From Rebecca billardiae RCC1528 (lineage: Eukaryota > Protista > Haptophyta), in contig OZ251231.1 of NCBI GenBank assembly GCA_965240325.2, positions 372,001 through 436,000 of the forward strand: 64,000 nucleotides of DNA, in the 5' to 3' direction. Positions 1,030 through 46,419 of this stretch are shown here, one piece after another. Each line of letters opens with the position of its first letter. Within the stretch, counting starts at the first letter, position 1. Below the pieces are notes generated by a model, which saw only the letters and a program-made list of their open reading frames with translations, was not told the DNA's origin and did not search any database. Both the position numbers and the translations under genes were made by a program.

Positions 1030-1124
1030 TGTCGGCCGCCACGAACTCACGAAGCGATTGGAGATTCATCAAGCGAAAGTGGATGACGAACGATTCATCA
1101 GTGGCCGGCGCCGGAACAAGCCTT

Positions 1125-1733: not shown

Positions 1734-2717
1734 CGCCCGACCGGGTGGTCACTCCCACTGGCGCCTTCGCGCGCTCATGGCGTCCGTGCGCGCGTGTGGG
1801 CTCTCAGGAGGGCGCACGGCTCAGTGTGGCGAGCGGAACGGTCGGTATGGTCAGTACAGTATGGGTGACGAGGTCGACGATGGGCCGGATGGGCTGCCAT
1901 CTGAGGACGAAGTCGGCCCGCTGGAGCTCGACGATCTGGCCGACGGTCGTGATTCCCTTGATCAGATGGCGACAACCGCGCGGACGACGAGACAGTTCAG
2001 ACGCCACCTGGCGGCAGGGCCCGCGCGCGACGCTGGAGTTGGGGTACATGCATCTTGTCCAATGCCTAGCCAGGGCGACGCGCAAGGTCAAGGCGACCAG
2101 CCCTCCCGCCGGTGCCCGCCGTGCGATCGAGCCTTCCACCCCATCTGCTGCATGACGTCTACCGGTTGGTAGCCTGCTGATCCAGAAGACTAGTGAGCAA
2201 GCATGTGTCCCTGGTGAGCGCGAGCGAGCGCTGCGGCTGACAACCTGACTCGGTTGACGGTTTGTGCGCGCGGCACGCGCACGCCTGACGCACTCTCCCG
2301 TCGGCCCGCGTCGGCGTGTGGCCGTGTGCGCGCGCGCCCGCACGGCCAGCCCAAGCACCAAACGGCCGCTGGCTCGCCGGTTGCGGTCCACCAAACTTGA
2401 CAGTGGCAGCAGGCTCCTGGTGGTGAGCAGCCTGAGATCGAGAGAAGATTATTGAGGAGTGACAATGAACACTACTACTACTTTTCAAAAGTACTCATAC
2501 GAGTGAAGTGTTAGCAGTGTACGCGCGCGTCCACCAATGGGGAGCGGGCACGCGCAGCGAGCTAGCCGCCAAATAGCCGAGCTTTATATTCCCGTAATCT
2601 TCTCGACGGAGCCACCGGCGCGCCGGCGCAGCAAACATTTTCAGCTCGGTGCGACGCGATCGTGCACGCACGGCCGGCAGCAACCTGCGCACGCGCGACG
2701 CGACCGGCGCGGTGGGG

Positions 2718-18348: not shown

Positions 18349-21300
18349 ACGCGCACACCGCGCGCACACCGCGCGCACACCGCACACGCACGCAACGCCC
18401 GCGCGCGCAGGGCGCCGCCCCGGCCGCACCTTTGCGCTGAACGCTCCGTAGAGCTCGGCGCGCGAGGGACCTCCCACTCCCTTCTGCAGCAGCGAGCAGC
18501 GCAGCGTGAGCCGTGTCGGCGGGATCACGGAGAGCTCGCGCAGCTGCGCGACCATCTGCAGGGAAGAAGGAGGGATCCAAGAGACGGGGGAACAGGGCGC
18601 GGCGAGGCGGCCGGGAGGGTGAGCGCGCGCGCACGCGTGCGGAGGGTTAGGGTTAGGGTTAGGGTTAGGGTTAATGACTGGGGGGACCGAGCGCGCGCGG
18701 AGCAGACTCGCTCCCGCGCGCGCGCGGGTGGTGGTGTGCGCACGCGCGCGTGCGTGCGTGACACGCGCGGCACGCAGCCTCGCGCGTGGGCCTCCGCCGC
18801 CGCGCGGCGCACCTGCAGCCCCCCCTGCAGCTCCTCGATGCGCCGCAGTGCGCTCTTATACACGCCCTTCATTCGGAGGGAAGCCGCGAGCCGGCCCGCG
18901 CCCGAGATGCGGCCGCGCTGGAGCTGCACCCAGCGCAGCCGCTCGAGCGCGTGCTCGAGCGTCTCGAGGCACATGAGCTCGCCGCGCACGCCCTCGATCT
19001 CCTCCTCCAGCCCCGCCAGCGCCTCCACCTTGTCCCGAGCCGGGCCGAGCAGCGGTCGGAACGACTCGATGTCGCGCGCCCAGTCCTGGGTGGTCATGTA
19101 GGCGCGGTCGAGCACGCGCTTGGCGGGCGTCTGGCGCGACGTGTCGTCGAGCAGCTCCCACAGCGCGTTGCGCCCGCCTGCGCGCCAGCCAGACGCGCGG
19201 GCGCGCGGCGCGCTCAGCCGTGCGCGGCGCGCGCGCGACACGCGCACACGCACGCGCGCGCGCGCGCGCGCGCGCAGACGGCGCAGCGGGGCGCGCGCGC
19301 GCACCGCGCCCCTCCTCGACGTGCGTGCACATCTCGGTGAGCTCGGCGATCGACGGCTTCGCCGCCTGCTCGCTCAGCACCTCGGCGTGCGTGCGGCTCA
19401 GGTGCCCGGTCGCACCGATCAGCAGCTGCGCAGCCCACGGGTGGCGCGCCTGCAGCTGCTGCGCCTGCGCGCGCGCGCCCTCGAGGTAGCGAAGGCGCGC
19501 GGCGGCGGAGCGCGCGGCGGAGGCCTCGTGCTGCAGCACGGCGAGCACGACCGGGCTCGTCCGCGCGCCGAACTGCACCTTCGGCCCCGCCTCCTCCGCC
19601 GCCTCGATCTCGACCATCCGCGCCTCCATCCACGCCATCGGGTGGCCGATCGATTCGAGCGCGCGCCGGTCAAACTGTTCGCCCACGTCGCGCAGCTGCG
19701 AGGTGAGCTGGAGGCGTCGGCGCTGCGCGTGCGCGGCGGAGGCGGCGAAGGAGGACTGCTCGTTCGACGGGAGGCCCGACGAGCCCTTCGCCGCCGAGCC
19801 GCGCCGCGAGCGCGCCATCGGCGGCGTGTGCTGCCCGGCTGAGCGAGGCGTGTCGCGCGCCGCGCCGTCCGCGCCCGCGCCGCCGCCGCCGCCGCCGTGC
19901 GGCGGCGTCGGCTGGCGCGGCGGCGAGCCGAGCGGCTGCGGCGCGGCGTCGGGGTCGGCGGCGGCCTCGTCCGCGCGCGCGCCGCCCGCCGCCTCGTCCG
20001 CACCGCCCTCGCCCAGCCCGCGCGCGCCGCCGCCGCCGCCGCCGGATGCGGCGGCGCGCGCGGGCGATTCGTCGGCGCGCGCGGAGCTGTCGTCCGGCCG
20101 CGGCGAGCGCCTCCCGGAGTCCTCGTCGGCGCGGCCGGACTCGTCGTTGGCCGAGAGGTCAGCGGCGTCGTCCGGGTCGAGGTCGGTGACGGGCGCCGCG
20201 GTGCCGCCCTCCGCCATCGACTCCGCGTCGCCGTCGCCCCAGAGCCCGCCCTCCGCCGCGGGCGCGCCGTCGGCCGCGCGCGCGGCGGCCGCCGCGGCCG
20301 CGGCCGCCTGCTGCGAGCGCGCGGTGCGCGCCGCCTCGGCGGCGGCCTCCGCGTCGCGCCGCGCGCGCGCCTCGGCCTCGGCGCGCGCGCGCGCGGCCTC
20401 CTCCGCCGCGGCCTCCTCCGCCGCGATCTCCGCCGCCAGCGCGTCCTCCGCCTCCGTCCGCCGCGCCGCCGCCGTCTCCGCGTCGACGTACGCGTACGCG
20501 CGCAAGCACTCGTCCATCACGCGCGACACGCCGACGCCGTGCGAGATCGCGGCGAGGAGGCGGTAGTACTCGGCGTGCGTGTTGGGCGGGAGCGCGCGGC
20601 GCTTGGCCTGCAGCCCGGCGAGCCGCGCCTCCAGCTCGGTGCGCAGCGGCGGCAGCGCCTCCAGCGCCTCCGCCACCGACGAGAGCGAGAGAGAGCCGCT
20701 GTCCGTCACGCGCGTGTACTCCGACCAGACCAGGTCCGACACCTCTTCCCAGCGGCGCACGTTGCGCTGCCACTTGACGGCGGCGTCGTTGAGCCGGCCG
20801 CCCTGCTCGCGCACCTTGGCGGTGAACTCGAGCCGCTCGCGCCGCAGCTGCCGCGCGCGGATCCGCGCCAGCTTGATCCGCATCCACACCTGGATCAGCA
20901 TGATCACGTGTTCGTACAAAGGGTAGCGACGCATGGCCGCCGCGAGCGTCTGCCGCCGCTTCACGAGGAGCGCCTCGCGCTGCCGCTTGAGGCGCTGGTC
21001 TGCGGCCTGCCGGATGAACTCGTCGCGCGAGAGGCCGGACTGCGAGAGCAGCATCGAGATGTCCCGGTCGCGCCGCGCCTTCCGCCGCCAGTGGTACTGC
21101 ACGACGCGCGCGGCGCCGTCCTCGCGCGCCCACACGCGCACGCCCACGCGCCGGTTGAAGCCGAGCCATCGGTACGCCATCGCAATCTTGGCGGCGGCGC
21201 GCTCGCGCGCGACGTTGGCGGCCTTGCGCCGCGAGAACTCGTGGGCGGAGCCGTACAGCAGCGCGGCCACCGCGTGCCACCGCCGCCCGTCGCCGTCCGC

Positions 21301-21515
21301 CGCGCCCAGGCTCGGCGGCAGCATCTGCTCCTGCGCATCCAGCTGCAGCCGCCGCCTCCGGCCCAGCATGTTTTCCATAATGAAAATATCGGCAGCGTTC
21401 ATCTCGCCAATCTCGTCGGCGGAGTGCGCGCGGGACGGGTGGAAGACGGAGGTGGAGGCGGCGGCGGCGCCGCCGCCGCCGCCGCCGAGCGCGCCCGCCG
21501 TGCCGCCCAACCCGC

Positions 21516-21554
<39 letters not shown>

Positions 21555-23890
21555 GCGCGGCCGCGCCGCCGCGCGAGGCGCCGAGCGCGCCCGGTGGCGG
21601 CGGCGACGCGCTGCGGCCGCCGCCGCCGCCGCCGGCGGCGTTGGCGCCGGCGGCGGGGCTTGGGCCGCGCCCCTTCTTCTTCTTCTCCTCGCGCGGCGGC
21701 GGCGGGTCGAACCAGTTCAGCGAGAACGGGTCCGTCGCCATCGGCAGCGGCAGCGTCCAAAAATCCGAGAGCACCTTGAGGACGAATGAGAAGCCGTGCC
21801 AGAGCGAGCGGCTCTCGCGCGGCCGCACGTTGGCGGAGGGTGGCGCCTCGATGTAGCGCAGCGCGTACGTGGAGATGAGCAGCGTGCCGTCGGGGCCGGA
21901 GGGCTGCGTCGCCGCGGCGATCAGCGCGCCCATCCCCGCGCCGCCCGCGTTCGCGTCGCGCAGCTGCAGTCGCTTCTCCGCGTCCTCCGACGCCTTGACA
22001 AGCTTGGCGGCGCGCGCGCGCTTGCGCGGCGCGTTCGGCGGCTCCGAGTACGAGGCGACGAACTCCTCCTGCGCGTGGTGCACCTGCTGGCACTCGCGGA
22101 GCAGCTGCACCATGCGCAGCAGCGTCATGCGCAGCTCGGCGAGCACCCGCGCCGCGTCCGAGCGCAGCTGGCTCGCCGTGGGAGAGGAGCGCGCTGCCGA
22201 GACTTCGCCTGAAAAGGCGTTGGGCTCGCCGGCGGTGCGCACGCGCCCGGGCGTGCCCGTGCCGCCGCTCGCGGCGGCGACGGCGGCGGCCTGCTGCCGC
22301 TGCACCTGCAGCCGCCAGCGCGTCGCCACGTCGAGCAGCGCCTCCGTCTGCATCTCGTAGAACTCGATCAGCGGGCGCATGTTCGCAGCCATCGGGTGGT
22401 CGTTGGGGAACGCCACGCCGCCGCCGCCGAGCGCCTGCCGCGCGCCGTCAGCGCCCGCGCCCGCCTCGGCCTCCGAGCCGCGGCCGGCGAGCGTGCGCGC
22501 GACGATGGCGCGGGTGGTCGAGTTCGCGCCCGCGGTGGTGATCAGGTGCACCACGCTCCCGCGCTTCGAGTGCGCCGTCGTCTTGATCGTCACGTGCCGC
22601 GCGGACGGAAGCGTCGACGGGGCGCGTGTCAGTCGAATGTGGTCCTCGGCGGTGAGCTGCGGAAGCATGGCCACGCCGAGCGGCGAGGTGGGCGCGGCGG
22701 CGGCGAGCGCGCCGGCGGGCACGAGCGCGGCGCCCACGCCCCCGCCCCCGCCGCCCGGCGAGCCGCCGCCGCCCGCCAGCGCGGGCTCGGCCCACGCCGG
22801 CCGAACGCCAGGGATCGGCTCCAGCGTCGCTCGCGCGCCGCGCGCGGTGCTGGCGCCCGCGCGCCGCGCGCCCGCGCCGCGCGCCGGCGGGGGCGCGCGG
22901 CCCGCGACGGTCGGGCCGGTGGTGGGGCGGGGGCGCGCTGCGCCGTCGGGCTCGGGGAGCGGCGCCGTGCGCTCGCCGATCGCGTGCAGCGTCACCGCGT
23001 GCTCGTCGACCGTGCGCGGGCGCGCCGCGCCGCCGTGCTCGGCCGTCCCCGCCGCGGCCGCGTCGCGACGGCCGCCACGCTTGCCGCCGCCGCCGTCGGG
23101 CGCGGCGGCGTTGGCGCGCGTGCGGCCGGAGAGCCGCTTCGGCTTGGGCTTGGGCTGCATCGCCGCCTGCCGCTCCGAGAGCGCGCTGAGCGACACCGCG
23201 TGCGCGCCCGTCGGGCGCGTGTCCACGTCCCTGGAGATCAGGCCAACCGCCTGCGCGTGCGAGCCGAGGCGAACGGCGGTTACATTCCGGGCGAGTAACG
23301 TCTCGGCGAGGTCGAGGTTCTTCGCGCCGACGGCGGCGGTGAGCGCCTCGCCGAGCATCAGCTCCGACGCGCCGCGCCGCGCCTCGCCGGACTCCCACCC
23401 GTCCCAGTGGTCGAACGCATCGAGCATGAGGTTGGTAATCCGGCCGGCGCGAGACGCGGCTGCGACGATCAGAGGCACGTGCGCTGACGTGAGCGCGGTC
23501 GGGTTCGCGTGCCGCGCGAGGAGCGCGCCGACGAGGGCGGAGTCGTTCGTCTCGATCGCGCGCTGCAGCGCGCTCCGCCCCGCGTGGTCCTTGATGTTCG
23601 TGTCCGCGCCGCGCGTGAGCAGCGCGTTCACCACCGCGCGCTCGTGCGCGTCGATGGCGCGCAGCAGCGCGGTGCAGCCACCCTCGTCGCGCGCGTCGAG
23701 CTGGATCACGCCGGGGGCGTGCACCGAGCCGAGGGCGACGAGGGCGGGGTGCTTCGCGCGCGCGCGCAGCCCGCCCGGGCCCGCCGACGCGCGGCGGCGC
23801 ACCGCCGACGCGCGCTTCGGCGTCGTCGGCTGCGCCGCGCCCCGGTCGCCGCCGTCGGCGCTGCCGCCGCTGCCGCCACGGAAGCTGGGC

Positions 23891-23935
<45 letters not shown>

Positions 23936-25497
23936 TCCTCGAAGGGGAAGGCGGCGTTCGGGTCCATCGGCGTCATGGGCGAGACGGGCGGCGAGCCGCG
24001 CGTGCTCCCGCCCGCGCCGCCGCCCGCCGCGGCCGACGGCGCCGCCGGCGCCGCCGGCGCCGTCCCAATCGCCATGTGCAACAACGTCGCCGACGGCTGA
24101 CCGCCCTTCTCAAGGAGCGCGGCGATGACAGGATCGCTCCCCTCCCAGAAGGCCACGTCGAGGGCGGTGAGGCCGGAGGCGTTGCGCACGGTGAGGTCGG
24201 CGCCGCGCTCGAGCAGCGTGCGCACGAACGACACCTCCAGCGCCGAGCTCGCCTCCTCCGACCGCGCCGCCTCCTCCGCCTGCTGCGCCGCCGCCGCCGC
24301 CGGATCGAGCGGCGCGCCGCCGTCCGCGCCCGCCGCCGCGCTGCTCAGTACGACGCCGGTGCCGCCGCCGGCGGCGCCGGCGGCGGGGCCGCCGTCGGCC
24401 GCGGCGGCGAGCTCGCGCGCGGCGCGGCTCGCGCTGATCATCACGCCGCACCGGTGCACCGCCACGTGCAGCAGCGTGTCGCCGCCGCCGACGCCGGTGC
24501 CGGCGATCGCCGCGCCGCCGAGCTGCGACGAGTCAGCGCGCGTCTCCGAGACGAGCGCGTTCACGTCGGCGCCCGCGTCGAGGAGGAGGTTGGCGGCGTC
24601 GTGGTCGCGCAGGTCGAGCATCGCCACCTCGAGCGCCGTCCGCCCCTGCTCGTCCCGCGCGCGCAGCAGCGCCGCGCCCTCCGACTCGAGCAGCGCCGCC
24701 ACCACGTCGGGCCGGCCGTGCACGAGCGCATCGTGCAGCGGCGCGCGCGAGCGCGAGCGGAAGAGCTGGACGGCGAGCTCGGTGCGCAGCGTGTGCTGCA
24801 CGCGCTCGTCGTGCAGCCGGTCGAAGTGGGCGTCGATCAGCCGCAGGCAGTACCGCACGAGCTGCCGCGCGTCCGCGTCCGCCGCCTCGTGCGCGCGCGA
24901 GATCAGCCGAGGGCCGACGTGCACGGACGCGCCGCGCGCGAGGTCATTCGCTATCTGCTGCTCGGCGAGCTCCTTGAGGCGCTGGAGCGCGTCGATCTCG
25001 CCGCGGTCGGCGCGCTGGAGCTCGTTGCACAGCTTGATCAGCTCGAAGAGCAGCGACGGCTTCTCCGACGGCAGCTTCACCCGCTCCGTGTACAGCTGCT
25101 CGAGCAGAAGACCGACCGCGTCCGCGTGCGCGCTCATCACAAACGCGCCCGACTTGTCGAGGTTGGCCTCGACGTGCGCGACGAAGCGCGGGCCGCAGCG
25201 CGCGGCGAGGACGGCCTTGTGCACCTTGAACTCGGTGCGCGCCACCGGCGGCGGCGCGTCCGCGCCGCCCACCGTGCCGACGTCGTGGTCCTCCGCGGAC
25301 GGCTGCTGCAGCGCATACGTCGTGCGGAGCGTGAGGTCGGCGTACTTGCCCGAGCCGAGGAGCGCGGCGAAGTCGCCGGCGTGGTCGGCGGGGCGGACGA
25401 GTGGGAGGTCCGGGCCGACCTCCCGCCCCGCCTTCGCGCCGCCGCCCTCCTGCCTGGTGCCCACGCTCATGCGCAAGCTGGGCTTGCTGGTGGCCAT
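14584..25497 (-). CDS. Giant multi-exon BTB/POZ - ankyrin repeat - IQ motif - coiled-coil - WW (CEP164-N-like) protein
   Basis: ATG 25497 (MATSKPSL). BTB: [20 protein letters not shown]. Ankyrins: [35 protein letters not shown]-like: [25 protein letters not shown]. Downstream exons give [63 protein letters not shown] and [22 protein letters not shown]. The exon 1 (~19305) to exon 2 splice checks in frame; later joins were not all verified. Confidence 0.75.
18643..18673. repeat. Interstitial telomere-like (TTAGGG)5 in an intron
   Basis: AGGGTT x5 inside intron 18556-18812. Confidence 0.9.
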
Positions 25498-25765
25498 GGC
25501 CCCCGGCGCTGCCCCGAGCGTCGCCGCGACCGCCGCGGCGATGAGGGAGAAACCGAACGGATGACGCGCGCAAAAGGAAACGTCCGCCGGCTGGTTTCCT
25601 TCCTCCTGGCCATTTTCTTCAGCGGGGAAATCAAGGATCGAAAAGGGCGTGCTGCCACGATGGCGCTCCCCTGAAACGACTCGGGGGAAACGAACTTGAA
25701 CCCCCCGGCGCACCTGGGGCGGGGCCCGGCCGCGCTCGGGGCGTCGCACCCACGCGCGCGCGCGC

Positions 25766-26320
25766 ATGAGCTCGTCCATCGCGATGTCGTCGCTCTCGTC
25801 CGGCTCGTCCATCCGCGCCCCCGCGCCCAAGATGGACGCGCCCACGCGCGCCACCACCGCGTGGCTGCGCGCGTGGGACAAGGCGCCGCGCTCGACCCGC
25901 GAGCGCATGCTCGCGCGCTTCGCGCACGAGCACGCGGGGCGCACGGCGCCCGAGATCGAGCGCGCGCTGGGCATCAGCGCGAGCCTCGTCTTCGCGCGCC
26001 TCGTCTCCTGGCTCCGCCTCACCGCGCCCACCGGCACGGCGATGACCGCGCAGCTGAACGCGCTCAAGGTGTTTGTGTGCGCCGCGTCGTCCGACCGCTT
26101 CGCCGCCGACCTCGTGAGCTCGGGCGGGCTGCAGACGCTGGTCGACGTGATCGCGCTGCCCACCGTCATCCTGCCCCACCTCCCCAAGCGCGAGGCCATC
26201 GTCATCCTCGACAGCATCGCGGCCAACAGCCGAGAGTACCGAGAGGTGAGACCGAGCGCACGCGCACGCACACACACGCGCGCACACGCACACGCACACA
26301 CGCACACGCACACACACGCG

Positions 26321-26353
<33 letters not shown>

Positions 26354-28377
26354 ACACGCACACACGCACGCGCACACGCACACGCACACACGCACACGCA
26401 CACACACGCGCACACGCACACGCACACGCGCACACGCGCACGCACACGCACACACACACACGCACACACACGCGCGCACACGCACACGCACACGCGGCGC
26501 ATACGCGCGCGCACACACACGCGCGCACACGCACACGCACACACACACACGCACACACACGCGCGCACACGCACGCACGGAGAGCGAGGGAGGAGAGAGA
26601 GAGCGCGCGAGAGACGCGCACACACAGCACACACGCGCACACACGCGCGCACGCGCGCACACACACGCGCGCACGCGCGCGGGAGCGAGGGTGTGCTGTG
26701 CTGGAGTTGTGTGCGAACGCCTGCCGCCCGCGCCAGCGGCGCCGAGACCCCCCCCCCCGCGCTGCGCCGCGCGGCTGCGCTCACCGAGCCGCGCGCGCGC
26801 GCCGCGGCGCAGACGATGTGCGCGCTGCAGGTGCCTGCCGTCGTCGTGACGTACGCCGGCGCGGCGCAGCACGAGTCGTGCGTGCGCGCGGCCACCGCCC
26901 TGCTCGTCACGCTCAGCGCGGCCAACCCTCGGTACGTGCACGCCGTGCACAGGGAGGCCCTCGACCTGCTCGTCGAGGAGCGCAACCCGCTGGCGCAGCG
27001 GTACGGGGGCGAGGCGCTCCGGCTCATCCTCGCCGCGCTCGACTACGAGGAGCTGTATGACGCGCTGCGCACGCGCCACCGTGCGGAGGACGACGACGAT
27101 GCGGGGGAGGAGGGGGGCGGCGCGGCCGCGGCGGCGCCCGCCGGCAGCGCGGCCAAGCCGGGCGCGAAGGGCGGCGAGGAGGAGGAGGAGGAGGACGAGG
27201 AGGAGGCGCAGGCGCGGCTGGCCGCCGCCGCCGCCGCCGCGGCCAAGGCCGCGCTCGCGGATGCGCCGGAGGCCGCCGAGCCCGGCACAGGCTCACGCGG
27301 CGGCACCGCCGGCAAGCCGGAGCGCCGCGCGCGCAGCCGGCTCGGCGCGGACCCCGAGCTCGCGCGCGCGCGGCGCGCGGCGCTCGACTCCGCGCTGGTG
27401 CTCAGCCCGGCGTACGTGGACGGCGGCGTGGCGCTTCTGCAGTCCTTCTCGATCCACACGCAGCGCGTCGGCGGGCACATTCTGCTGCTGCTTGCCGAGC
27501 ACAAGCCGCTGCACGAGCTGCTGCTGCTGCGCATGCGCGCCGTGCTTATCGAGGCGCGCGCGATGCACGCGCAGGTGCGTGCGCGGCTGCCGTGCGCCGC
27601 GGCGCGCGCGGCACACCGCGCCGCCAACCCGCGCCGCGCCGCCGCGCACCCGCCCCCTGCCCGACGCAGGCCGCCGTGGCGCACGTGATTGGCCAACTGC
27701 TCGGAACCGCGCCACTCAACCGACACGGCGCCGACCCGCCGCGCGACGAATCGTCCGTGCTCGCGGCGCACGAGGCGCGGATCTCGATCATCCCGCGCAC
27801 CAACCGCGAGCTCCTCGCGGAGCGGCTGGTGGGCGCGGACTTCATCCCGCTGCTCGTCGGGCTGCTGATGCACATGCGCTCGCACGAGTGCAGGCGGCAG
27901 GCGGCGGTGTCGCTCCAGACGATCGCGCGCTTTGGCAGCCCCGCCGCCGCCGCCGCGGTGCAGCAGTACGCCGCGCCGGTGTTCAGCGAGCTGCTGGTGC
28001 GCGCGCGCGCGCGCGCGCGCGCGCCAGCCCCCTCCGCACGCCGCGCACGCGCACGCCGCCCGCCCGCTCCAGCCTCGCCCTCGCCCAGCGGGAGCTGCCC
28101 GTCGCCCACAGCCCTCAGCTTCAGACTCACCTCCGCGCGCGCCGCGCCGCGCGCGCGCGTGCGCCGCCCGCCGCAGGATGACCCGCTCGGCCTCTCCTCC
28201 GCGCCCCTCGAGGAGGGCGTCCGGCAGCAGATCAGCGCGCTCGTCTCAAAGTACCGAGACCAGCTCGAGCGCGCGGCGGCGGTCAGCTTCGACCAGACGC
28301 CGCCCGGCTCGTCGGAGGCGACCCCGGCGGTTGGGAAGGACCGCTTCGCAAAGCCAGCGCAGCCGCCTGTCGCCTAA
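25766..28377 (+). CDS. ARMH1: Armadillo-like helical domain-containing protein 1 homologue (4 exons)
   Basis: [24 protein letters not shown]...[25 protein letters not shown] and ANPRYVHAV match my recollection of the ARMH1/C1orf228 N-terminus. Introns are ~26246-26812, ~27575-27669 and ~27997-28176. The start could be the ATG at 25832. Confidence 0.8.
26257..26680. repeat. Intronic (CA/CACG)n microsatellite-like tract
   Basis: cacacg/cacgca repeats filling ARMH1 intron 1; a similar tract lies at 18290-18390. Confidence 0.9.
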
Positions 28378-31578: not shown

Positions 31579-32233
31579 CTAGCTCAAGCTGTCGTAGTCG
31601 TTAGCTTTAGCTAATAAGTTGGGCACGCTTTGTCGCTTACACTTACAGCACTGTCAGCAGGTCGCTGGGCCACCGTGCTGCATGGGCAGCCGATTAATAT
31701 TTATAATATAAATATAACTACTTAATTCTTAAAGCCAGCATCGGTCTGTACTCGTATTCGTAGCAGTGATCTGTGATGTACTACACGGCGACTGCCGTCG
31801 CGTAGCGCAGTCGCGCGTATAGTCACCGCGTATATCGTCATCAGCCATCAATATCTGACGAATAATCAGTCGCGAATAATGGATTAATCTCGTCTAGTAA
31901 ATTAAGGATAAATGCGATCGGCCGCGGCCCGGGGCCTAGTGGGGTCAGAGCTCCGACCGTTACGCTCTCCGGGGTGCCACAATCTCCCGAACTGATCTCT
32001 TAGCATGAACTATCACACGGGTATTTACTTGGACGAACTAGTTAGTAGGCGTTACTAAGGCTTAATTCCAGGGTCACAGCAACGACTTCTTTTTTAAAGC
32101 GGCCGTTAGCGTGTCCATCGGCCGGATTATTTTACGGAAAATTACTATGCGCTGCGCGCGCGCGCCCAGCGGGCGGCGCGCGCGCGCGACTAGTCCCCCC
32201 TGCATGCCCTAACCGTCAGCTGCCTGATTCCCG

Positions 32234-35200
32234 CTACCCAGCCCCGCTGCCGTCGCGCGCGACATCCGCGCCGTCGCTCACCGTCGCCGAGGCCGAGCGC
32301 GCCGCCGCCCTCAATTTGCTCTTGAGTGCCGACAAGTCCTCCTCCGGAAGCCCAGCCTCCTCGCGCACGAGCTTGCGCGCCGCGATGTACTCGTCGACCA
32401 GGTCGTGCGCGCCGGCCTTCGCCTTGCGCTGCCATTCGCGCTGCCGCTTGCCCTCCTTCTTCAGCCAGAGCCGCCGCACCTTGTCGCCGAACTCCTCCTC
32501 CGCCCACGTCGCAAGCGACACGCGGCGCAGGAGCTGCGCGGCCGTCGAGATGTGCGGCTGCACCGTCGACTTCTTCCCCTCGGCATACTCGCGGACGAAC
32601 GAGTCGAGCGACTTGCGCGCGTTCACGAGCGGCATCGCCCGCTTGGTCACCTGCACGAAGTGCTCCTGCACCTGCTCGTCCGCGAGCTGCACGAGGTGGC
32701 CCCACCGCCTGATCAGCAGAGGCAAGACGAACCGCGCGATCGTCTTGTACTGCGAGGTGACCGGCTTGAGGACGAACAGGTCGAGCGCCTCGACCCACGC
32801 CGTCGCGGCTGCCTCAACCTCGTCCGCACGCTTCGCGCGGCCATCGTCATCGTCCGTGTAGCCGCGCGAGGAGACGAGGTCGTGCAGCTGCCACGTGAGC
32901 ATGAGCAGGCGGCAGAAGAGTGCCATGCGCGGCATGTCCGCGATCTCGGCCTTCAACTGCGCCTCGTCGTCAAAGCCGATCTCGTCCATCATCTCGCGCT
33001 CCTCCTCGTCCTGCATGTCCGAGATGCGCGCGTCCTCGTCGCCGCTGTCCGCCGCGCCCGCGCTGCTCGCGCCGTCGAGATCCGCGTCGATCTTCCACAC
33101 GACCTGCACCAACGCCCAGAAGACCGCGTGCGTGCGCAGCAGCGAGATGCCGTCGCCGCGGAGGTCGGGCACGCCGATCTCGTTGGTGCGCGTGCGCCGC
33201 TTGGGCACTCGCACAGGCACGCCCGCGTTCTTGAACAGGACGATCAGGTCGTACTTGGTGAGCGGCGCGTCGCGGCCGTACAGCTCGTCCACCTCCCTCC
33301 ACAGCGCCGACAGCACCGGCTTGAAAGTGTCGTGCTTGAAGTGCATGATGCCGGGGAAGTAGTTGACGTGCTCGAGCTCCAGCTGCGGTAGCAGCCACTG
33401 GTTCTCGTGCAGCTTCTGGTCGACGATGCGCTCGGCGTCCTTCGAGTCGTCGGCGAGAAGGCGGCGGCGCTTGGTCATCTCGGCGTCGCACTCGCCCTGG
33501 TCGGCAGGCGTGACCTTGCACGCAGGGCACGTCACGCCCGGGTCCGCGTGGCACAGCGCGCGCGCGCGCTTGTACGTGCGCAGCCGCCACTGAGGCGAGC
33601 CGCCGTCCGCGCCCGCCTCCTTGACCGCCCACACGTTGAAGCGGAGCGGCGAGACGTTGTGCGAGCCCTGGCCGGCGAGGCTGGCAAGGTTGACATAATC
33701 GCCGGTGTACGTGATGATGGCCTTCTGCTCCTCCGCGTAGTCGGCCGCCTCGCCGCCGCCGCCAAAACCGCCGCCGGCCGCGCCGCCCGCCGCGCCGGCA
33801 GCGCCGGCCGCGCCGGCCGCGCCGGCCGCGCCGGCCGCGCCGCCGGCCGCGGCGGCCGCGGCGGCCGCGGCGGCCGCGGCGGCCGCGCCGCCGGCCGTGC
33901 CCGCGCTCGGGTTGCCAGCCGCGCTGCTCGCCGCGCCGCCGGCCGCGCCACCGGCCGCGCGGACGCCAGCGCCGGCGGTGCCGCCAGCCACGCCGCTGCC
34001 GCTGCCGCTGCCGCCCGCGCCGCCCGCGCCGCCCGCGCCGCCGCCAGCGCCCGCGCCCGCGTTACCAGCCGCGCCGCCGGCCGCGCCGCCGGCCGCGCGG
34101 ACGCCAGCGCCGGCGGTGCCGCCAGCCACGCCGCTGCCGCTGCCGCCCGCGCCGCCCGCGCCGCCCGTGCCGCCGGCCGTGCCGCCGGCCGTGCCGCCGG
34201 CCGCGCCGCCGGCCGCGCCGCGGGCCTCGCCGCGGCCCGCGCCGCCGGCCGCGCCGGCTGTGACGGCCGCGGCCGCGCCGCCGGCCGCGCCGGCCACACG
34301 TGCGGTGGCGGCAGCAGGCGGCGTCGGTCGCGGCGGAAGCAGGCCGCTCCGGATCACGTCATTGATCGCGTCGGCGTGCGCACTCCATAACTCGGACATG
34401 TCCGAGTCCGGCCGCTCCGAGATGGCGATCGCCTCTGACGACGCGAGCGCGCCGTAGTTGACGCCCCAGCCGTTGCGCACGATGGCGATCGTGGCCGTGC
34501 GCGAGTGAGCCGTGTTGCCCGCGTCCGCCGAGAGGAGGAGGACGTGCGGATGCCCGCGCGGGCGCGCGGACTTGCCGTTGCGCTCCGAGCGATCCAGCAC
34601 GGCGTGCACGGCCTGCGCCCACGGCCGCGCCGCCGACTCGCTGCCGATCATGAGCACGCCCGCGCCCGCGTGCTCGCGATCGCGCTGCGCGACCTCTCGA
34701 GAGCCAGCCGCCGGCGGCGGGATCGGGTGGCGGATCGGCTCGCGGCCGAAGCCGCCGCGGAAGACGGTGCGAGCCGAGTGCTCGCCCGTCACCGGGTGGA
34801 TCTCCTTCCCCACCCACTCGCGCCACGTGTCGAACTGCGCGTCCGTGACGTTCTTCGAGACGAGGTAGCCGGCGACGTCGTGGTGCGTCTGATGAGATTG
34901 AATCTCGCGCACAACGCCCACTGCGCCGCGGCGCTGCTGGAGGTAGGCGTGCCTCGCCCACGGCTTGCGCGAGCCGTCGTCTGCGCCCTCGAGCATCTCG
35001 TGCAGCACGAGGTCCATCACGTCGTCGGGCGTGCCACGCAGGATGTGCTCGATATGGTCCGCCTCCCCCCGCCTGCGCTTGCGGCACGCGTTGCTCGAGA
35101 CCGAGAGAGATGGGCGCTGAGCGCGCTGCCGATGAGCGCCGTCCAGCCCGTTCAGCTCGGCGAGGTGCTCGAACTTGCCGGCGGCTCGGTCGGCGCGCTT

Positions 35201-36979
35201 GCGCGCGGCGTCCTTGTCGCGCTTGAGCTCGACAAGCTGCGACTGCTGCTCGTCGCAGAGCGACTGGGCGTGCGCGCACTGCTGCTCGAGCAGCTGCTGC
35301 GCGTGCAGCGCAGCCGCGAGCTCGTGCTCGACGCCGCTCAGCGCGTCAGCGGCGATGTGCTCGGTCGCGGTGAGGCGGCGCTCCAACTCGAGGGCCCGAT
35401 CGCGCTGCGCGTCGGCGGCGCGCTGCGCAGCTGCGGCCCGCGCGTTCGCCTCTTCGAGATCGCGCCGAAGCTTCGCCTGCGCCTGCTCCGCCTCGGCGTC
35501 GTGGCGGGTGCGCGCATCCGCGCTGTGCCCGGCGCGGTACCCGGCGAGCACAGCGCGCCTCTCCGCGGCAGCAGCGGCGGCGCGCGCGGCGGCGATCCGG
35601 TCGAGGGCCTCGCGCTCGATGTTCTCGCACTCGAGCTTGACGGCGGCGATCACCACGTCGAGAACCGGCTCGAGATCGACGGCGGCCGAGTTGACGATGT
35701 CCTCGCGCTGCCGCACCGCGTCGTCGCGCTCGCGCTCGAGCTCGCCGTTGAAGTGCTCGAGCTCGGTCACACGTGTGCGCAGCGAGGTGAGCTCGAGCTC
35801 GGAAGGGACGCTGCGCGTGCTGTGCGAGCGCCGCAACTGCTGCTCGAGCTCGGCCACGTGCTGCAGCTCGGCCATGCGCCTTCGACCCCGTGCTGTCTGC
35901 TCGTCCGCCTCTGCCTCGGGCGTCGGCGCCACGCTGCCAGCCGAGCGCGTGAGAGGCCGCTGGCGGGTGGGCGCGGCCGAGAGCAGCACGGCAGGCGGCG
36001 GCGACATGAAGGCGGGCGAGGCGACGGCAGGTGACCTCGGCGGCAGCAGCTCTTCCGCCGACCCACCGACGAACGGCTGCGCCGCCGCGCCAGCGAGGAG
36101 GAGTGGCGGCGCGGGCTGGCGGGAGGCGCTGCGCGTGACCGCGGGCGACGGCGCAGCGGCAGCAGGAAAGCTCAAGGCGGAGGAGGCGTTGGTAGTGGCG
36201 GGCGAGAAGACGAGGTGGTCGGCGTGAGCGGGAAGAGACGAGAAGCGGGCAGCGACGACGGCGGGAGACAAATCGGCGGCGGCGGCGGCGGCTGATGCCG
36301 CCGCCTCGCCGCCATCAGCTCGAAGGAGAGCGAGCGCGCGCGCGGTCGGTGGACGGGCGGCATCATGCGGCGAGGACAGCGGCTGCGGCTGCGGCCGCGG
36401 CCGCGGCCGCGGCCGCGGCTGCGGCGGCTGCACGAGCGGCGGAGGCAGGTGCGGAGGCGCCGACGGCAGCTGCGGCGGTGGCGGAAGCGACGGCAGCGGC
36501 GGCGGCCCCAACGGAGGCAGCGGCTGGGTGTCCGCGACCGCGTAGGGCATCACGGCGGCGGACGATGGATCGGATGGCGCGTCGGCGCAGAGGCCGGGCG
36601 TGAGACCGAGGACTGGAACATGCGAGAGAGGCTGAGAATGAGAATGCAGATGGGCATGCGTGGGATCGAGGGCAGAGAGATCGAGGGGGGGATGCGGCGC
36701 GACCGCGCCGTCACCAGCTGGCGCGCGACGCCATCGGGCGCTGCTCGCTGCTCGGCGAGTGGCGGTCAGCTGCTCGCGCTGCGAGCGGCGCGCTTTCCAG
36801 TCCGCGCGCTTGCGCCGTGAGACGTCGGACTCGGGCGGCGCCGCCGGTGCCGCCGCGGCGGGCGCCGCGGCAGGCGCTGCCGGCGGCGCGCCCGTGAGCT
36901 CCGACGGGCCCTTCGTCACAGACGGCGTGCGCCGCCAGCCCCGCCTCCGCCGCGGCGCATCGAGACGCCCTGCGCGCAC
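32234..36979 (-). CDS. RAG1/Transib-like DDE transposase (true start uncertain; may be spliced to the upstream ORF)
   Basis: Colinear motifs: RPSLSVSSNACRKRRR (NBD-like), YLVSKNVTDAQFDTWR (DDBD-like), LLLSADAG (D1), YTGDYVNLASLAG (D2), PGIMH, DLRGDGISLL, VTSQY...LPLLIRRWGHLVQLADEQVQEH (E). Confidence 0.75.
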   Translation of the reverse strand: MRAGRLDAPRRRRGWRRTPSVTKGPSELTGAPPAAPAAAPAAAAPAAPPESDVSRRKRADWKARRSQREQLTATRRAASSARWRRAPAGDGAVAPHPPLDLSALDPTHAHLHSHSQPLSHVPVLGLTPGLCADAPSDPSSAAVMPYAVADTQPLPPLGPPPLPSLPPPPQLPSAPPHLPPPLVQPPQPRPRPRPRPQPQPLSSPHDAARPPTARALALLRADGGEAAASAAAAAADLSPAVVAARFSSLPAHADHLVFSPATTNASSALSFPAAAAPSPAVTRSASRQPAPPLLLAGAAAQPFVGGSAEELLPPRSPAVASPAFMSPPPAVLLSAAPTRQRPLTRSAGSVAPTPEAEADEQTARGRRRMAELQHVAELEQQLRRSHSTRSVPSELELTSLRTRVTELEHFNGELERERDDAVRQREDIVNSAAVDLEPVLDVVIAAVKLECENIEREALDRIAAARAAAAAAERRAVLAGYRAGHSADARTRHDAEAEQAQAKLRRDLEEANARAAAAQRAADAQRDRALELERRLTATEHIAADALSGVEHELAAALHAQQLLEQQCAHAQSLCDEQQSQLVELKRDKDAARKRADRAAGKFEHLAELNGLDGAHRQRAQRPSLSVSSNACRKRRRGEADHIEHILRGTPDDVMDLVLHEMLEGADDGSRKPWARHAYLQQRRGAVGVVREIQSHQTHHDVAGYLVSKNVTDAQFDTWREWVGKEIHPVTGEHSARTVFRGGFGREPIRHPIPPPAAGSREVAQRDREHAGAGVLMIGSESAARPWAQAVHAVLDRSERNGKSARPRGHPHVLLLSADAGNTAHSRTATIAIVRNGWGVNYGALASSEAIAISERPDSDMSELWSAHADAINDVIRSGLLPPRPTPPAAATARVAGAAGGAAAAVTAGAAGGAGRGEARGAAGGAAGGTAGGTAGGTGGAGGAGGSGSGVAGGTAGAGVRAAGGAAGGAAGNAGAGAGGGAGGAGGAGGSGSGSGVAGGTAGAGVRAAGGAAGGAASSAAGNPSAGTAGGAAAAAAAAAAAAAAGGAAGAAGAAGAAGAAGAAGGAAGGGFGGGGEAADYAEEQKAIITYTGDYVNLASLAGQGSHNVSPLRFNVWAVKEAGADGGSPQWRLRTYKRARALCHADPGVTCPACKVTPADQGECDAEMTKRRRLLADDSKDAERIVDQKLHENQWLLPQLELEHVNYFPGIMHFKHDTFKPVLSALWREVDELYGRDAPLTKYDLIVLFKNAGVPVRVPKRRTRTNEIGVPDLRGDGISLLRTHAVFWALVQVVWKIDADLDGASSAGAADSGDEDARISDMQDEEEREMMDEIGFDDEAQLKAEIADMPRMALFCRLLMLTWQLHDLVSSRGYTDDDDGRAKRADEVEAAATAWVEALDLFVLKPVTSQYKTIARFVLPLLIRRWGHLVQLADEQVQEHFVQVTKRAMPLVNARKSLDSFVREYAEGKKSTVQPHISTAAQLLRRVSLATWAEEEFGDKVRRLWLKKEGKRQREWQRKAKAGAHDLVDEYIAARKLVREEAGLPEEDLSALKSKLRAAARSASATVSDGADVARDGSGAG

Positions 36980-37773
36980 ACCTTGAGCAGCTCGCCGCTC
37001 ACGTCAGCGCGCCCCTTCTCCTTCTTGAAGCGCCATGGCTGCATCAGCGCGTAGCGCTCGGCGTCGACGCTCACGCCGCCCTGCGCGTCCTGTGGCGCGT
37101 GCAGGCCGCCCTGCGCGTTGAGCGAGATCACGCCCACGCGCACGTGCGCGAACTGCTGGTACGCGCCGTCCGGATCGAGCCGATGCATCTCGGTGTGCTC
37201 GATCGAGAGCGAGTGCACCGTGTTGATCGCCGAGAGGTGCCGGTCCGTGCGCGCGCCGCCGAGCGCGTTCGCCCGCAGCGGCTTCGGGACGCGGCGCATG
37301 CCCAGGTTGAGCCACGTCGAGATGCGCTCGGGCTGGTACGAGCTCACGGTGCGCCGCGTGCGGTCCTTCTCTCGCGTCTCGTGCACGACGCCCTGGTCGT
37401 CGAGCGAGGTGAACATCGGCGAGTAGAGGGCGTCACGCGGGAACAGCGCCAGCTTGGCCTTGCGCAGCAGGTTGCCCTTCTTCCGGCTGCCCTTGATGGC
37501 GACGAAGTTGTTGACCTTGCGCTTGACCTCCGCCAGGTAGTTCTCGTTCGGCATGATCGAGTGGTCCACCTCGCTCGCCGCCTCGCGCGCGCGCAGCATG
37601 AGCGTCTCGTGCTCAGCCGCCTTCTCCGCGGCCGCCGCGGCCATGCGCCGCCGCACAGATGCGGCAGAGACCTTGCGCCCGATGCCGTAGCCGCCCTTCC
37701 GCTGCAGCTTGACCTTCTTCGGCTTCGCGCAGGAACGCTTGCCCTTGCCCACGGTAAGCACAGCCGTCGTCAT
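36916..37773 (-). CDS. Basic transposon-encoded ORF of unknown function, or first exon of the transposase
   Basis: 285-aa ATG-initiated ORF, Lys/Arg-rich N-terminus (NLS-like), coding-like codon use; candidate donor AAG|GTGTGC at ~36981. Confidence 0.7.
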   Translation of the reverse strand: MTTAVLTVGKGKRSCAKPKKVKLQRKGGYGIGRKVSAASVRRRMAAAAAEKAAEHETLMLRAREAASEVDHSIMPNENYLAEVKRKVNNFVAIKGSRKKGNLLRKAKLALFPRDALYSPMFTSLDDQGVVHETREKDRTRRTVSSYQPERISTWLNLGMRRVPKPLRANALGGARTDRHLSAINTVHSLSIEHTEMHRLDPDGAYQQFAHVRVGVISLNAQGGLHAPQDAQGGVSVDAERYALMQPWRFKKEKGRADVSGELLKVCAQGVSMRRGGGGAGGARRL

Positions 37774-38653
37774 TGCTGCGCGCGGCGAGCGCGGTCCCGC
37801 GCGGCCGCCGCCGGGCGCAGCCGCAGCAAGTTAGTCTGATGCAAATTCCCGGTCACCCATGCAAAAGTAAGCGTTCCCGCTGAGCATGTGCGTGGATCAC
37901 GAGTAACCCGCCGCCTGAATACAAACTCCGCGCCCCTCCATACACTTCCTGCATCCCCGCGCGCGGCGGCGTGCAGGCGGGCGCAGATTCGCACCGTGTT
38001 ACGAACAGACCTAGCAAAGTAGATCGGCGTGGCGGGTCGGGACGCGGAGCGGGTGCGGGGCAGGTGGGGGATAGGTTGGGGAACACCCGCGATTAGAGCA
38101 CCGGTGGCGCAGCGGCGACGTGGACGCCGCCACACGCGCACGCACGGCGCACGCGCGCACCGGGACTTTCAACTTCGCGTCGGAGCTCTGGACGACCGTC
38201 GGTTGGTCCGAGCGGCGCGAGGAGGCTCTCGGGATTGTGGCCGGACGCCCGGGTTGAGCCGTTAACGGCCGAAAATCAATTTGTTGGAGTTTCCTTAACG
38301 GCCGCTTTAAAAAAGAAATCGTTGCTGTGGGTGTAGAATCCGCCTGTGCCAATTTCAGACTAAAATGTGATCTAGACGGTGCGATTCTGGTGCAAATAGC
38401 GAGATCGTCACCTTGGAGATCGTTATTTATTCGTGTATCTCCCCTCGGACTAATGTTGCCGAGATCGCGTCGAGATTGAGGTCGTATATCTCCAGTATAT
38501 TATTGTGACATTTTTTCGCAGAACTTGTCAGCGTGACCCCAGCTCATTTCAGGCGAATATTGACATCCCGAAGTTTGCTGAGAGCCTCATCCAGTCAAGA
38601 CGACAGGAAGTTGGATTTTGGGCCACGCACCCCCCAGTGGGGCTCTGACCCCT

Positions 38654-44181: not shown

Positions 44182-46122
44182 TCATACCCCCGGTGTGCCC
44201 GCGCCGTTCGCCCCGGGCGACGCGCTTGGAGATGCGCCGGCCCCGCCGTCGCCGTCCTTGGGCACGCTCACCTCCGGCAGCGAGTCGCGCACAGCGCTCA
44301 GCTCGACCGCGCCCTGGTTTGATGGCTCCCTCGGCGAGGTGAGGCTGACGCGGAGAGGCACGCCCGCGCCGTCACCGGCGGCGAGCATCATCTGGAACCT
44401 GCCGCGGCCCTCCGCCTGGCAGGGACAGCGGCCGCACGCGGCGCAGGCGAGGCAGGGCAGCGCGAGGCACAGCGCGACGCCGCTCACGATCGTCATGTAC
44501 AGCAGCACGTGCCAGTCCAGCCCCTGCCACGCGTCGGACGAGTCGCACGGCGGGACGGGCGGCGAGAAGGCCTCGAGCCGCGCAGACGGGACCCACCCCG
44601 CGTTGGCCGCGTCGAGAAAGCCCCAGCGCGGGTCCTGCAGCTCGTTGTGGAAGTTCCAGAAGGTCCAGCCGCGCGAGGCCTCGTACCCGCGCAGCGCGTA
44701 GTGCGCGAACAGCGTGTAGAACTCGTCGTACGACAGCCGGCCCCTCGGCACGACCAGGGGGTCGACCGGGCACTGACCGTTCTCATCCGGACCTCCGATG
44801 GCCGCCTGCGGCCGCGGCTCGCCCGAGCCGGTGGCGAAGGGCGGCAGCTTGCCGAAGCGCTCGGGGCACTTGACGCGGCCGCACGCCGAGGGCCGCGTGA
44901 ACGACGCGTCGAGCCCCATCCCGTTCAGCCACGTCATGCAGTCCGAGATGGCGAGCGACCACTCACCGACGACCGTCGGCAGCGCGGTGCGCTCCATCTC
45001 GGCGATCTCGTCGCGCGCGCCGCAGCCCGCGCGCCGCAGGTGCACGACCTGCGCGACCTCGGAGCCCTGCGGCCACCAGCCGTGGTACCGGTGCGTGTCG
45101 AGTACCGCGTCCGCCTCGAGCCACGGCTCGCCCTCCGCGCGCGCCACCCCCCAGATGTCGCTCCGGAACGAGACGTCCAGAACGGGCGTGACGCGAGTGT
45201 TGTTGGCGCGGATCGCCGCCCACGCGCGCCTGTAGAAGGCGAGGAGCTGGTCCTGCGGGATGGGGCAGCCGGACTCGCAGAAGCCGGAGAGCGCGAAGCC
45301 GATCGGCTCGTTCACGAGGCCCATCGCCACGACCGCCTCCTCCTCGGCGTACCGCCTCGCCACGCGGCCGAGCACGTCGATCGCGACCGCGGAGGCGTGG
45401 TGGCCCAGCCACGCCGTCGCGTTGAGCGGCCGGCCAAACGGCGGCTTGTGCGTGTCGCCCGAGTTGTCGAAGCCGTTCTGCGAGTGCATCACGCCGTGCA
45501 GGTCGAGCACCACCCGCAGCCCGTGCTTCTTCGCCCAGCCCACCGCCAGGTCGACGTACTCGATCGACGTGACGTTGGGGCAGAACTCAGGCCGGTCGCC
45601 AAACGCCCAGTAGCCGTACGGGAGCCGCACCGTGTTCACGCCGAGGGAGGCGAGGCGCTTGAAGACGGTCTCGTTGACCCACGAGCGGCGGAACACGTCG
45701 AGCTGCCGCTGCGCCTCCTTCGGCCCGAGCCGCTCGCACAGCGTGCGCTCGTCCACGACGGCAGGCTTCTTGTCGTCGAGGAACTGGTAGAAGAGAGAGG
45801 GCGTGATCCACGGCTCGAGCACGAGCCAGCCGCCGAGGTTGACGCCGCGCATCGTGGCGTGCGGGTCGACGGGGGTGGCGTTGTACCGGGCGGGCTCCAC
45901 CGGCGTGTAGATCGGGCTCGAGTACGTCGCAACGGCGAGCAGCGCGCCGCACAGCGCGCACACGCAGCCGAGCGCCAGCGTGAGCGCGCACATCACACCG
46001 CGCGTCGAGCAGCAGCCACCTGACAGCGGGCGCGCGGCCTCGCGCACTGCTGGGTTGGAGTCGGCAAGGTCTACGTCATCGTAGCTGTCCTCCACCGCCG
46101 TCGGGATCGGCGGCGTGCTCAT
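44182..46122 (-). CDS. Glycoside hydrolase family 5 exo-1,3-beta-glucanase-like, with N- and C-terminal TM helices
   Basis: RGVNLGGWLVLEPWITPSLF, VRLPYGYW, DLHG..SQNGFDNSG, NEP (acid/base), DTHRY, VGEWS (nucleophile), GWTFWN. Confidence 0.93.
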   Translation of the reverse strand: MSTPPIPTAVEDSYDDVDLADSNPAVREAARPLSGGCCSTRGVMCALTLALGCVCALCGALLAVATYSSPIYTPVEPARYNATPVDPHATMRGVNLGGWLVLEPWITPSLFYQFLDDKKPAVVDERTLCERLGPKEAQRQLDVFRRSWVNETVFKRLASLGVNTVRLPYGYWAFGDRPEFCPNVTSIEYVDLAVGWAKKHGLRVVLDLHGVMHSQNGFDNSGDTHKPPFGRPLNATAWLGHHASAVAIDVLGRVARRYAEEEAVVAMGLVNEPIGFALSGFCESGCPIPQDQLLAFYRRAWAAIRANNTRVTPVLDVSFRSDIWGVARAEGEPWLEADAVLDTHRYHGWWPQGSEVAQVVHLRRAGCGARDEIAEMERTALPTVVGEWSLAISDCMTWLNGMGLDASFTRPSACGRVKCPERFGKLPPFATGSGEPRPQAAIGGPDENGQCPVDPLVVPRGRLSYDEFYTLFAHYALRGYEASRGWTFWNFHNELQDPRWGFLDAANAGWVPSARLEAFSPPVPPCDSSDAWQGLDWHVLLYMTIVSGVALCLALPCLACAACGRCPCQAEGRGRFQMMLAAGDGAGVPLRVSLTSPREPSNQGAVELSAVRDSLPEVSVPKDGDGGAGASPSASPGANGAGTPGV

Positions 46123-46419
46123 TGCGCCCGGCCGCCGTATTCGGGGGCGCGAGGCCGGAAGGTCACCTTGCGCGGCTGGCTCACCTGCCGCCAATGCTGG
46201 TACCGAGTCCGGGGCCGCGCCGAACCGCCCGAAGCCGAAGCCCAAAGCTGAAAGCGCCCATCAGAATCAAGAGCTGGCGACCTCCCCAAGCCCGGCAAGG
46301 GCCGTGCTCCCGGACGCACGGCGTCGCCGCGTCGACCCGCGAGCGAAGACGACCAAAGACCGGGAGCCACGGCGCTCTGCCTCGTGCTCGCCGCGGCGGC
46401 GGTGTCGCCGTCGAGCGCG

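Follow-up and report, generated by a model that had tools for sequence, protein, structure and literature searches.

To which group of transposons does an element belong when its transposase is predicted to fold like RAG1 and its ends recall a different group? The question is raised by the locus at 32075-38329 of a 64-kb stretch of the genome of the haptophyte Rebecca billardiae RCC1528 (contig OZ251231.1). This whole stretch is referred to below as the window; its GC content is about 72%, and all coordinates are window coordinates. Antibody genes are assembled by RAG1, an enzyme descended from Transib-type transposases, and to our knowledge the relation of the RAG1 fold to the much larger CACTA-type group of transposons is known from short shared motifs only. 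Our analysis indicates that the locus, 6255 bp in length, is probably an apparently autonomous cut-and-paste transposon, and that it represents a rare lineage with the RAG1 fold inside the CMCT assemblage, not within Transib/RAGL. It is neither a true Transib nor an ancestor of RAG, nor does it constitute a novel type of mobile element. The CMCT assemblage comprises EnSpm/CACTA, Mirage, Chapaev, Transib, Plavaka, ESTA, as well as Lanisha (Kojima 2025, PMC12730594); it is defined by 5'-CA..TG-3' ends, a target site duplication (TSD) of 2-5 bp and a C(2)C motif, with an H(3-4)H motif helping to define it (PMC12730594).

The ends of the element consist of the following features:

32072-32074: GGT, putative left copy of the TSD, identical to 38330-38332
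32075-32108, + strand: terminal inverted repeat (TIR) at the 3' end of the gene, beginning CACAGCA and enclosing both a T6A3 block and a copy of CGGCCGTTA
38263-38271, - strand: subterminal copy of CGGCCGTTA, a candidate transposase-binding site judging by the motif counts at the element ends
38296-38329, - strand: TIR at the 5' end of the gene, partner of 32075-32108
38330-38332: GGT, putative right copy of the TSD, read directly from the flank

At the left junction, ...CCAGGGT is followed by CACAGCAACGACTTCTTTTTTAAAGCGGCCGTTA (32075-32108, + strand), and at the right junction ...TAACGGCCGCTTTAAAAAAGAAATCGTTGCTGTG is followed by GGTGTAG. The inverted copy of CACAGCAACGACTTCTTTTTTAAAGCGGCCGTTA at 38296-38329 agrees with it at 33 of 34 positions, with a C/T mismatch at position 12. 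Two TIR matches were found within the window, both at the element ends, where chance predicts none. A preliminary description, made from the letters of the window alone, had reported 34-bp repeats with one mismatch and a CACAGCA start, together with an exact GGT on both sides, and both readings hold. GGT stands flush against each TIR; the chance of such a flush 3-bp agreement is 1/64, which makes it suggestive, for what is a single instance. Duplications of other lengths were considered for this copy and rejected: for 5 bp, the flanking 5-mers disagree (AGGGT vs. GGTGT), and for a flush 2 bp, so do GT and GG. Because neither the 5-mer nor the flush 2-mer agrees, 3 bp is the simplest reading of the duplication.

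The termini of the element are thus CACAG...CTGTG, i.e., CAC...GTG. The 3-bp duplication had been described earlier as non-canonical. Within the CMCT assemblage as published, CAC ends combined with a duplication of this length are nothing out of the ordinary; CAC...GTG ends with a 3-bp duplication form the signature of EnSpm (PMC12730594).

Of the nonamer CGGCCGTTA, 64 kb contain three copies (0.61 expected), and each copy lies at an element end, one in each TIR and one in a subterminal position; none of the shuffles reached three occurrences. The terminus CACAGCA is identical to the heptamer CACAGTG at 5 of 7 positions, and the relatives described below carry CACTGCT instead. A T6A3 block is found in both TIRs, 8 bp beyond CACAGCA, in an arrangement that loosely recalls heptamer-spacer-nonamer; the relatives L006-L008, which are of the CACTG type, do not conserve it.

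Between the TIRs, the coding sequence is organized as follows:

32234-35875, - strand: transposase coding region, from Met369 to the stop codon, recognized by third-position GC, 31 homologues, the AlphaFold2 model and the RAG1 match
33769-34295: GC-rich microsatellite array of 524 bp, period 9-12 bp, in frame (Tandem Repeats Finder)
35930-36979, - strand: non-periodic stretch of about 1 kb with flat phase-specific GC, Pro/Ala-rich in the frame of the long open reading frame (ORF)
36916-37773, - strand: ORF1, 285 aa with an ATG start, recognized by third-position GC and by collinear weak similarity to relatives

The long ORF runs stop-free over 1581 codons (32234-36979, - strand). Since the window has about 72% GC, open frames alone are weak proof of coding, and phase-specific GC was considered as well. 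Third-position GC reaches 0.86-0.98 in the long ORF from about 35930 to 32330 and 0.92-0.98 in ORF1. The stop-free ORFs put forward earlier are present, as frames of 1581 codons and 285 aa; the first ~350 codons of the longer one lack periodicity. Codons 1 to about 350 (36979 to ~35930) are probably not coding as read, and the stretch 35930-36979, which separates ORF1 from the transposase codons proper, would be a spacer between genes or else an intron. The coding part of the transposase begins with a coiled coil (about aa 369-620), followed by the DDE core (aa 620-1581). Within this core, the microsatellite encodes a Gly/Ala stretch of 185 aa between the first and second catalytic Asp, at a position that holds a Cys-rich insert in relatives; in the structural model, this stretch (residues 275-458) is disordered. 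It was rejected as a protein domain, being the product of the microsatellite array.

ORF1 and the transposase do not share a reading frame. Two frame-compatible GTGAG donors, at 37074 and 37002, could splice ORF1 onto the transposase, and in two gene models of Pavlovales sp. CCMP2436 (P0025 and P0029) an ORF1-like domain is fused to the transposase. The arrangement is compatible both with one spliced gene and with two genes. ORF1 has collinear, weakly similar counterparts in the ORF1 of L006, an element from a metagenome, and in the N-terminal parts of P0025 and P0029; it would be a conserved accessory protein or an N-terminal exon, of unknown fold.

How widespread this transposase is was assessed with a HMMER scan of 1.84 billion representative proteins, using the C-terminal 506 aa as the query. 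The scan returned 31 relatives, three of them below 1e-30 and most of them fragmentary, which originate from Pavlovales sp. CCMP2436 (annotated as 'hypothetical protein'), an MMETSP transcript, Logan assemblies, and TARA and JGI marine metagenomes. None of the 31 bears a transposase name. The closest relative, P0001 from a contig of GCA_046766215.1 (locus L001), is 68% identical and is an internal-deletion derivative, in which the coiled coil is joined to the C-terminal third and the part with the first and second Asp is gone. A word-indexed homologue search with the single sequence gave no match, and the same search with a profile recovered P0032 and P0001 only.

The alignment of the family reveals a series of conserved blocks: S-x-D-A-G; T-G-D-x-x-N-L; H-x6-C-P-x-C; G-[IVM]-M-H-x-x-H; L-K/R-G-x-x-[ILV]-x-x-x-R-T; and S-Q/E-Y-x8-P-x6-G-x7-E-Q-x-Q-E-x6-K. 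The motifs quoted in the preliminary description were all found where it had placed them, and the residues it had chosen as D, D and E are those that the family conserves:

34523-34525, - strand: D819 in LLLSADAGN, predicted first catalytic Asp, D in 10/11 members
33698-33700, - strand: D1094 in TYTGDYVNL, predicted second catalytic Asp, D in 12/13 members
33518-33529, - strand: C1151-x2-C1154 (CPAC), a C(2)C motif as in the CMCT/RAG1 zinc site, C in 15/16 and 14/15 members
32663-32677, - strand: E1435-Q-V-Q-E1439, in the S-x-Y-x8-P-x6-G-x7-E-Q-x-Q-E block, with E1435 the likely catalytic Glu

E1435 is Glu in 20 of 23 members and E1439 in 19 of 20 (alignment A3), and both are invariant in alignment A4 (E41 and E45). 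His residues are conserved on either side of the CxxC (H1144 in 13/15 members, H1191 in 15/15), and the M-H-x2-H motif is likewise retained (H1213 in 13/16, H1216 in 15/17). The CxxC and the MH..H motif follow one another as do C727/C730 and H795 of RAG1, their putative counterparts.

Three complete relatives of the element were recovered by a peptide-pattern scan of metagenome contigs. The L006 element (444-6400, 5957 bp) has perfect TIRs of 20 bp or more beginning CACTGCTTTGCC and the same layout of ORF1 plus transposase. The other two, L007 (100-3553) and L008 (124-3586), are 3.45-kb internal-deletion derivatives of the L006 element; they are 98.8% identical to each other and share the same CACTG... 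TIRs, and their flanks are unrelated. L007 and L008 are evidence for present or recent mobility of the transposase family in a marine eukaryote. In the L006 transposase the frame switches at about 4830-4900, just before the S-Q-Y...E-Q-x-Q-E block (ORFs 2059-4926 and 4674-5435), probably because of a short intron; the element at 32075-38329 has no break at this site. At the Pavlovales sp. CCMP2436 loci L005, L011 and L012, the search for TIRs met with long palindromic duplications or assembly gaps only.

We consider it very improbable that the locus is not currently mobile, i.e., a dead copy that has few stops owing to the 72% GC, or a domesticated gene flanked by chance repeats. Long spurious ORFs are indeed common in the window, the first ~350 codons of the long ORF are non-periodic, the catalytic domain contains a microsatellite, and the two ORFs are out of frame with each other. 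Nor was a second copy or an empty site retrieved: the TIR scan of metagenome contigs gave 0 matches, and none is on record from exact look-ups of ORF1 and two flanking ORFs. Against these stand TIRs that agree at 33/34 positions and are unique, a strong third-position GC periodicity over ORF1 and 3.6 kb of the transposase, and catalytic and family-conserved residues that are all intact, while the microsatellite is in frame and falls in a loop where relatives tolerate another insert.

The fold of the transposase was predicted with AlphaFold2 for aa 620-1581 from a 32-sequence alignment. The mean predicted local distance difference test score (pLDDT) is 67.6, lowered by the microsatellite stretch, and that of the core is about 90. 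D819 is placed within beta1 (model residue 200; strand 193-203), D1094 immediately past beta4 (model residue 475; strand 466-474), and E1435 at the N-terminus of model helix 817-832, beyond a large helical insertion; the predicted secondary structure agrees with a DDE core of RNase H-like type. In a Foldseek search of the PDB, the top 49 matches were all RAG1, BbRAGL or HzTransib, with a best E-value of 1.8e-3, which is marginal, and a best TM-score of 0.52. VIA-align, run against 48,161 representative chains and repeated on the Foldseek list, ranked the solved structures as follows:

RAG1: Z 16.2-17.6 over 408-423 aligned residues (17.6 over 422), model residues 96-885 to RAG1 482-1007
BbRAGL (amphioxus): Z 15.4 over 429-438 aligned residues
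HzTransib: Z up to 13.9 over 373/480 residues, covering 45-482
P element transposase: Z 8.7 over 298 aligned residues
ISCth4: Z 7.8 over 222 aligned residues

The remaining VIA rows were helical-bundle noise. The structural check proposed with the preliminary description thus placed RAG1, RAGL and Transib far above other solved folds, and between the DDBD and the CTD the modeled architecture resembles that of RAG1. The correspondence ends there: the structural alignments start at RAG1 residues 476-482, beyond the NBD, which is left unmatched, and the equivalence to this domain that had been suggested for the protein is not borne out. A coiled coil is present at the N-terminus here.

As first proposed, the element might be a genuine, highly diverged member of the Transib/RAG1-like group, whose target stagger would have shifted from 5 to 3 bp in this copy or lineage. 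RAG1, BbRAGL and HzTransib are its only strong structural matches, with RAG1 476-1008 and HzTransib 45-482 covered, and the CACAG termini resemble the heptamer of the recombination signal sequence and of Transib. The placement of the DDE residues and the CxxC past the second Asp, on a predicted fold of DDBD, RNase H, zinc-binding and C-terminal parts, are further likenesses to RAG1/RAGL/Transib. The best match being RAG1 is not decisive, however, and cannot separate Transib from the CMC lineages (EnSpm/CACTA, Chapaev/Chapaev3, Mirage), because no CMC transposase structure has been solved. In sequence, no similarity to RAG1/RAGL/Transib was detectable. Pfam, its RAG1 family included, gave no match to the entire ORF, to segments of it, to ORF1 or, at E<=1, to any of the 31 family members, and searches of PDB sequences with phmmer and with two profiles (the whole family; the E-motif block) returned no RAG1, RAGL or Transib chain at E<=10. 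RAG1L and Transib proteins, by contrast, share a mean mutual identity of about 26% (PMC9435367). Membership in the RAG1/Transib family, as first proposed for the protein, finds no support in any of the sequence tests.

The duplication points the same way: it is 3 bp in length here, vs. 5 bp in Transib/RAGL, including AanRAGL of the alga Aureococcus (PMC9435367). The zinc site differs as well. Of the RAG1 ligands C727, C730, H937 and H942, the CxxC is kept and the H(3-4)H pair is not; at the positions before the catalytic Glu, 2 and 6-7 residues past the conserved Tyr, the protein has T and F/V in place of the RAG1-type H(3-4)H. His occurs at these positions in at most five relatives, and the H(3)H is kept by P0028 only. 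What the family conserves is H-x6-C-x2-C-x36-H together with M-H-x2-H (window 33400-33550 and 33330-33345), with other His residues flanking the CxxC. Judging from the alignment, this pattern suggests that the zinc site has been re-wired relative to RAG1.

Finally, there is no RAG2-like gene; ORF1 is the sole further coding ORF of the element. The model of ORF1, built from a 4-sequence alignment (pLDDT 65), consists of a long helix and, after it, an antiparallel sheet. Its fold searches with VIA and Foldseek gave a best Z of 5.5 and negligible TM-scores, which is weak evidence given a 4-sequence model. ORF1 was rejected as a RAG2 analogue, having neither a Kelch propeller nor a RAG2 match, in agreement with the earlier remark that the element has no RAG2-like partner; the adjacent ORF thus sets it apart from ProtoRAG-type RAGL elements. 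Taken with the sequence searches, the duplication and the zinc ligands, this leaves membership in the Transib/RAG1-like group decidedly unlikely in our view.

Within the CMCT assemblage, the element is better accommodated. It has CA..TG termini, a duplication within 2-5 bp and the C(2)C motif, and its likeness to RAG1 emerges only through structure-level methods, as it does for ESTA, whose link to RAG1 was detected with HHpred only (PMC12730594). The haptophyte host and an ORF1 domain of its own distinguish it from CMCT members. With EnSpm/CACTA elements it shares CAC...GTG termini, a 3-bp duplication and two coding regions.

It is nevertheless quite unlikely that the element, instead of being new, belongs as a strongly diverged member to one of the known CMC lineages (EnSpm/CACTA, Chapaev/Chapaev3 or Mirage). 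The EnSpm signature at its ends (PMC12730594) and the C(2)C motif speak for this reading. The two-ORF layout also recalls the TnpA/TnpD pair of CACTA elements. The terminus is CACAG, however, and not CACTA, and ORF1 has no recognizable fold, TnpA-like or other. Neither the protein nor its 30 relatives matched any Pfam family at E<=1, CACTA transposase families included, the H(3-4)H is absent, and none of the 31 relatives among 1.84 billion representatives is named a transposase. The suggestion that the lineage is undescribed is in line with these results: it has no Pfam family, and no published description of it was found in the literature searched.

At the most general level, the element has the features of eukaryotic DDE cut-and-paste transposons, namely TIRs, a duplication, and conserved D, D and E on a predicted RNase H-like fold. 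It is also, as first perceived, a complete-looking DNA transposon with TIRs, duplication and transposase. The placement of its lineage inside CMCT has to be weighed against several points. The H(3-4)H, which helps to define the assemblage, is absent from the copy at 32075-38329 and from most relatives. The Pfam and PDB searches linked the sequence to no CMCT member, and for this reason the assignment rests on the predicted fold and short motifs. The 3-bp target duplication is plausible and has one copy as its basis, and at the relatives the duplications differ, with TA/TA at L008 and none at L006 and L007; since metagenome assemblies can join the flanks of different copies, the data from the relatives were given little weight. 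The equivalence of D819, D1094 and E1435 to a catalytic triad, and their clustering in space, are predictions drawn from the model. The 524-bp microsatellite in the catalytic domain, like the shift of frame from ORF1 to the transposase, could also mean that this copy is non-functional. The preferred reading, a rare RAG1-fold lineage inside CMCT, remains the probable one with these points taken into account.

A bolder proposal would place the family outside CMC, as a deep sister of Transib and RAG1L together, in which H-x6-CxxC-x36-H replaces CxxC...HxxxxH and the stagger is shorter. We regard it as rather unlikely. If true, the RAG1 fold would be rooted in unicellular algae independently of the Aureococcus RAGL, and the family could serve as a natural experiment for learning how the fold determines duplication length.

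For the transposon of the CMCT lineage preferred here, a possible transposition cycle can be outlined. The transposase would dimerize and bind the TIRs, perhaps via the CGGCCGTTA motif repeated at the ends, and would then nick at the CAC termini and so release the element. A hairpin may form on the flanking DNA, by analogy with the RAG, Transib and hAT enzymes. The 3'-OH ends would join the target with a 3-bp stagger, yielding the GGT duplication.

Several other features were observed in the window. A second element with CACAGTG...CACTGTG ends occupies 9131-11765, inside a (GTAT)n microsatellite. The phase of the repeat shifts by 2 across the insertion, which corresponds to a duplication of 2 bp (TA) or 6 bp and excludes 3 or 5 bp. 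This element may be a non-autonomous relative, mobilized by a sister transposase. Among the neighboring genes, 44185-46245 (- strand) is similar to glucan 1,3-beta-glucosidases of glycoside hydrolase family 5, with 57% identity to a protein of Diacronema lutheri and other haptophytes next, 18859-27027 (- strand) is an ankyrin-repeat ORF of 2723 codons, and 53604-54953 (- strand) is a kinesin-motor fragment. The genome of D. lutheri has 73% GC (PMC8379373). By these neighboring genes, the host is a pavlovophyte-type haptophyte that differs from D. lutheri. The Logan run ERR14847148 consists of assembled reads of the same species as the window.

Together, our results describe a haptophyte lineage that has the predicted architecture of RAG1 without detectable sequence similarity to it, with changed zinc ligands and with duplications of 2-3 bp, not 5 bp. 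With this lineage, a known group of transposons gains a rare branch from algae, one in which the RAG1-type His pair is replaced. Repeat libraries and Pfam miss the family, which consequently stays unmasked in pavlovophyte genomes and is annotated as 'hypothetical protein'. As a distant and so far unused data point, it can help to root the CMCT assemblage and to address the structural determinants of the target stagger.

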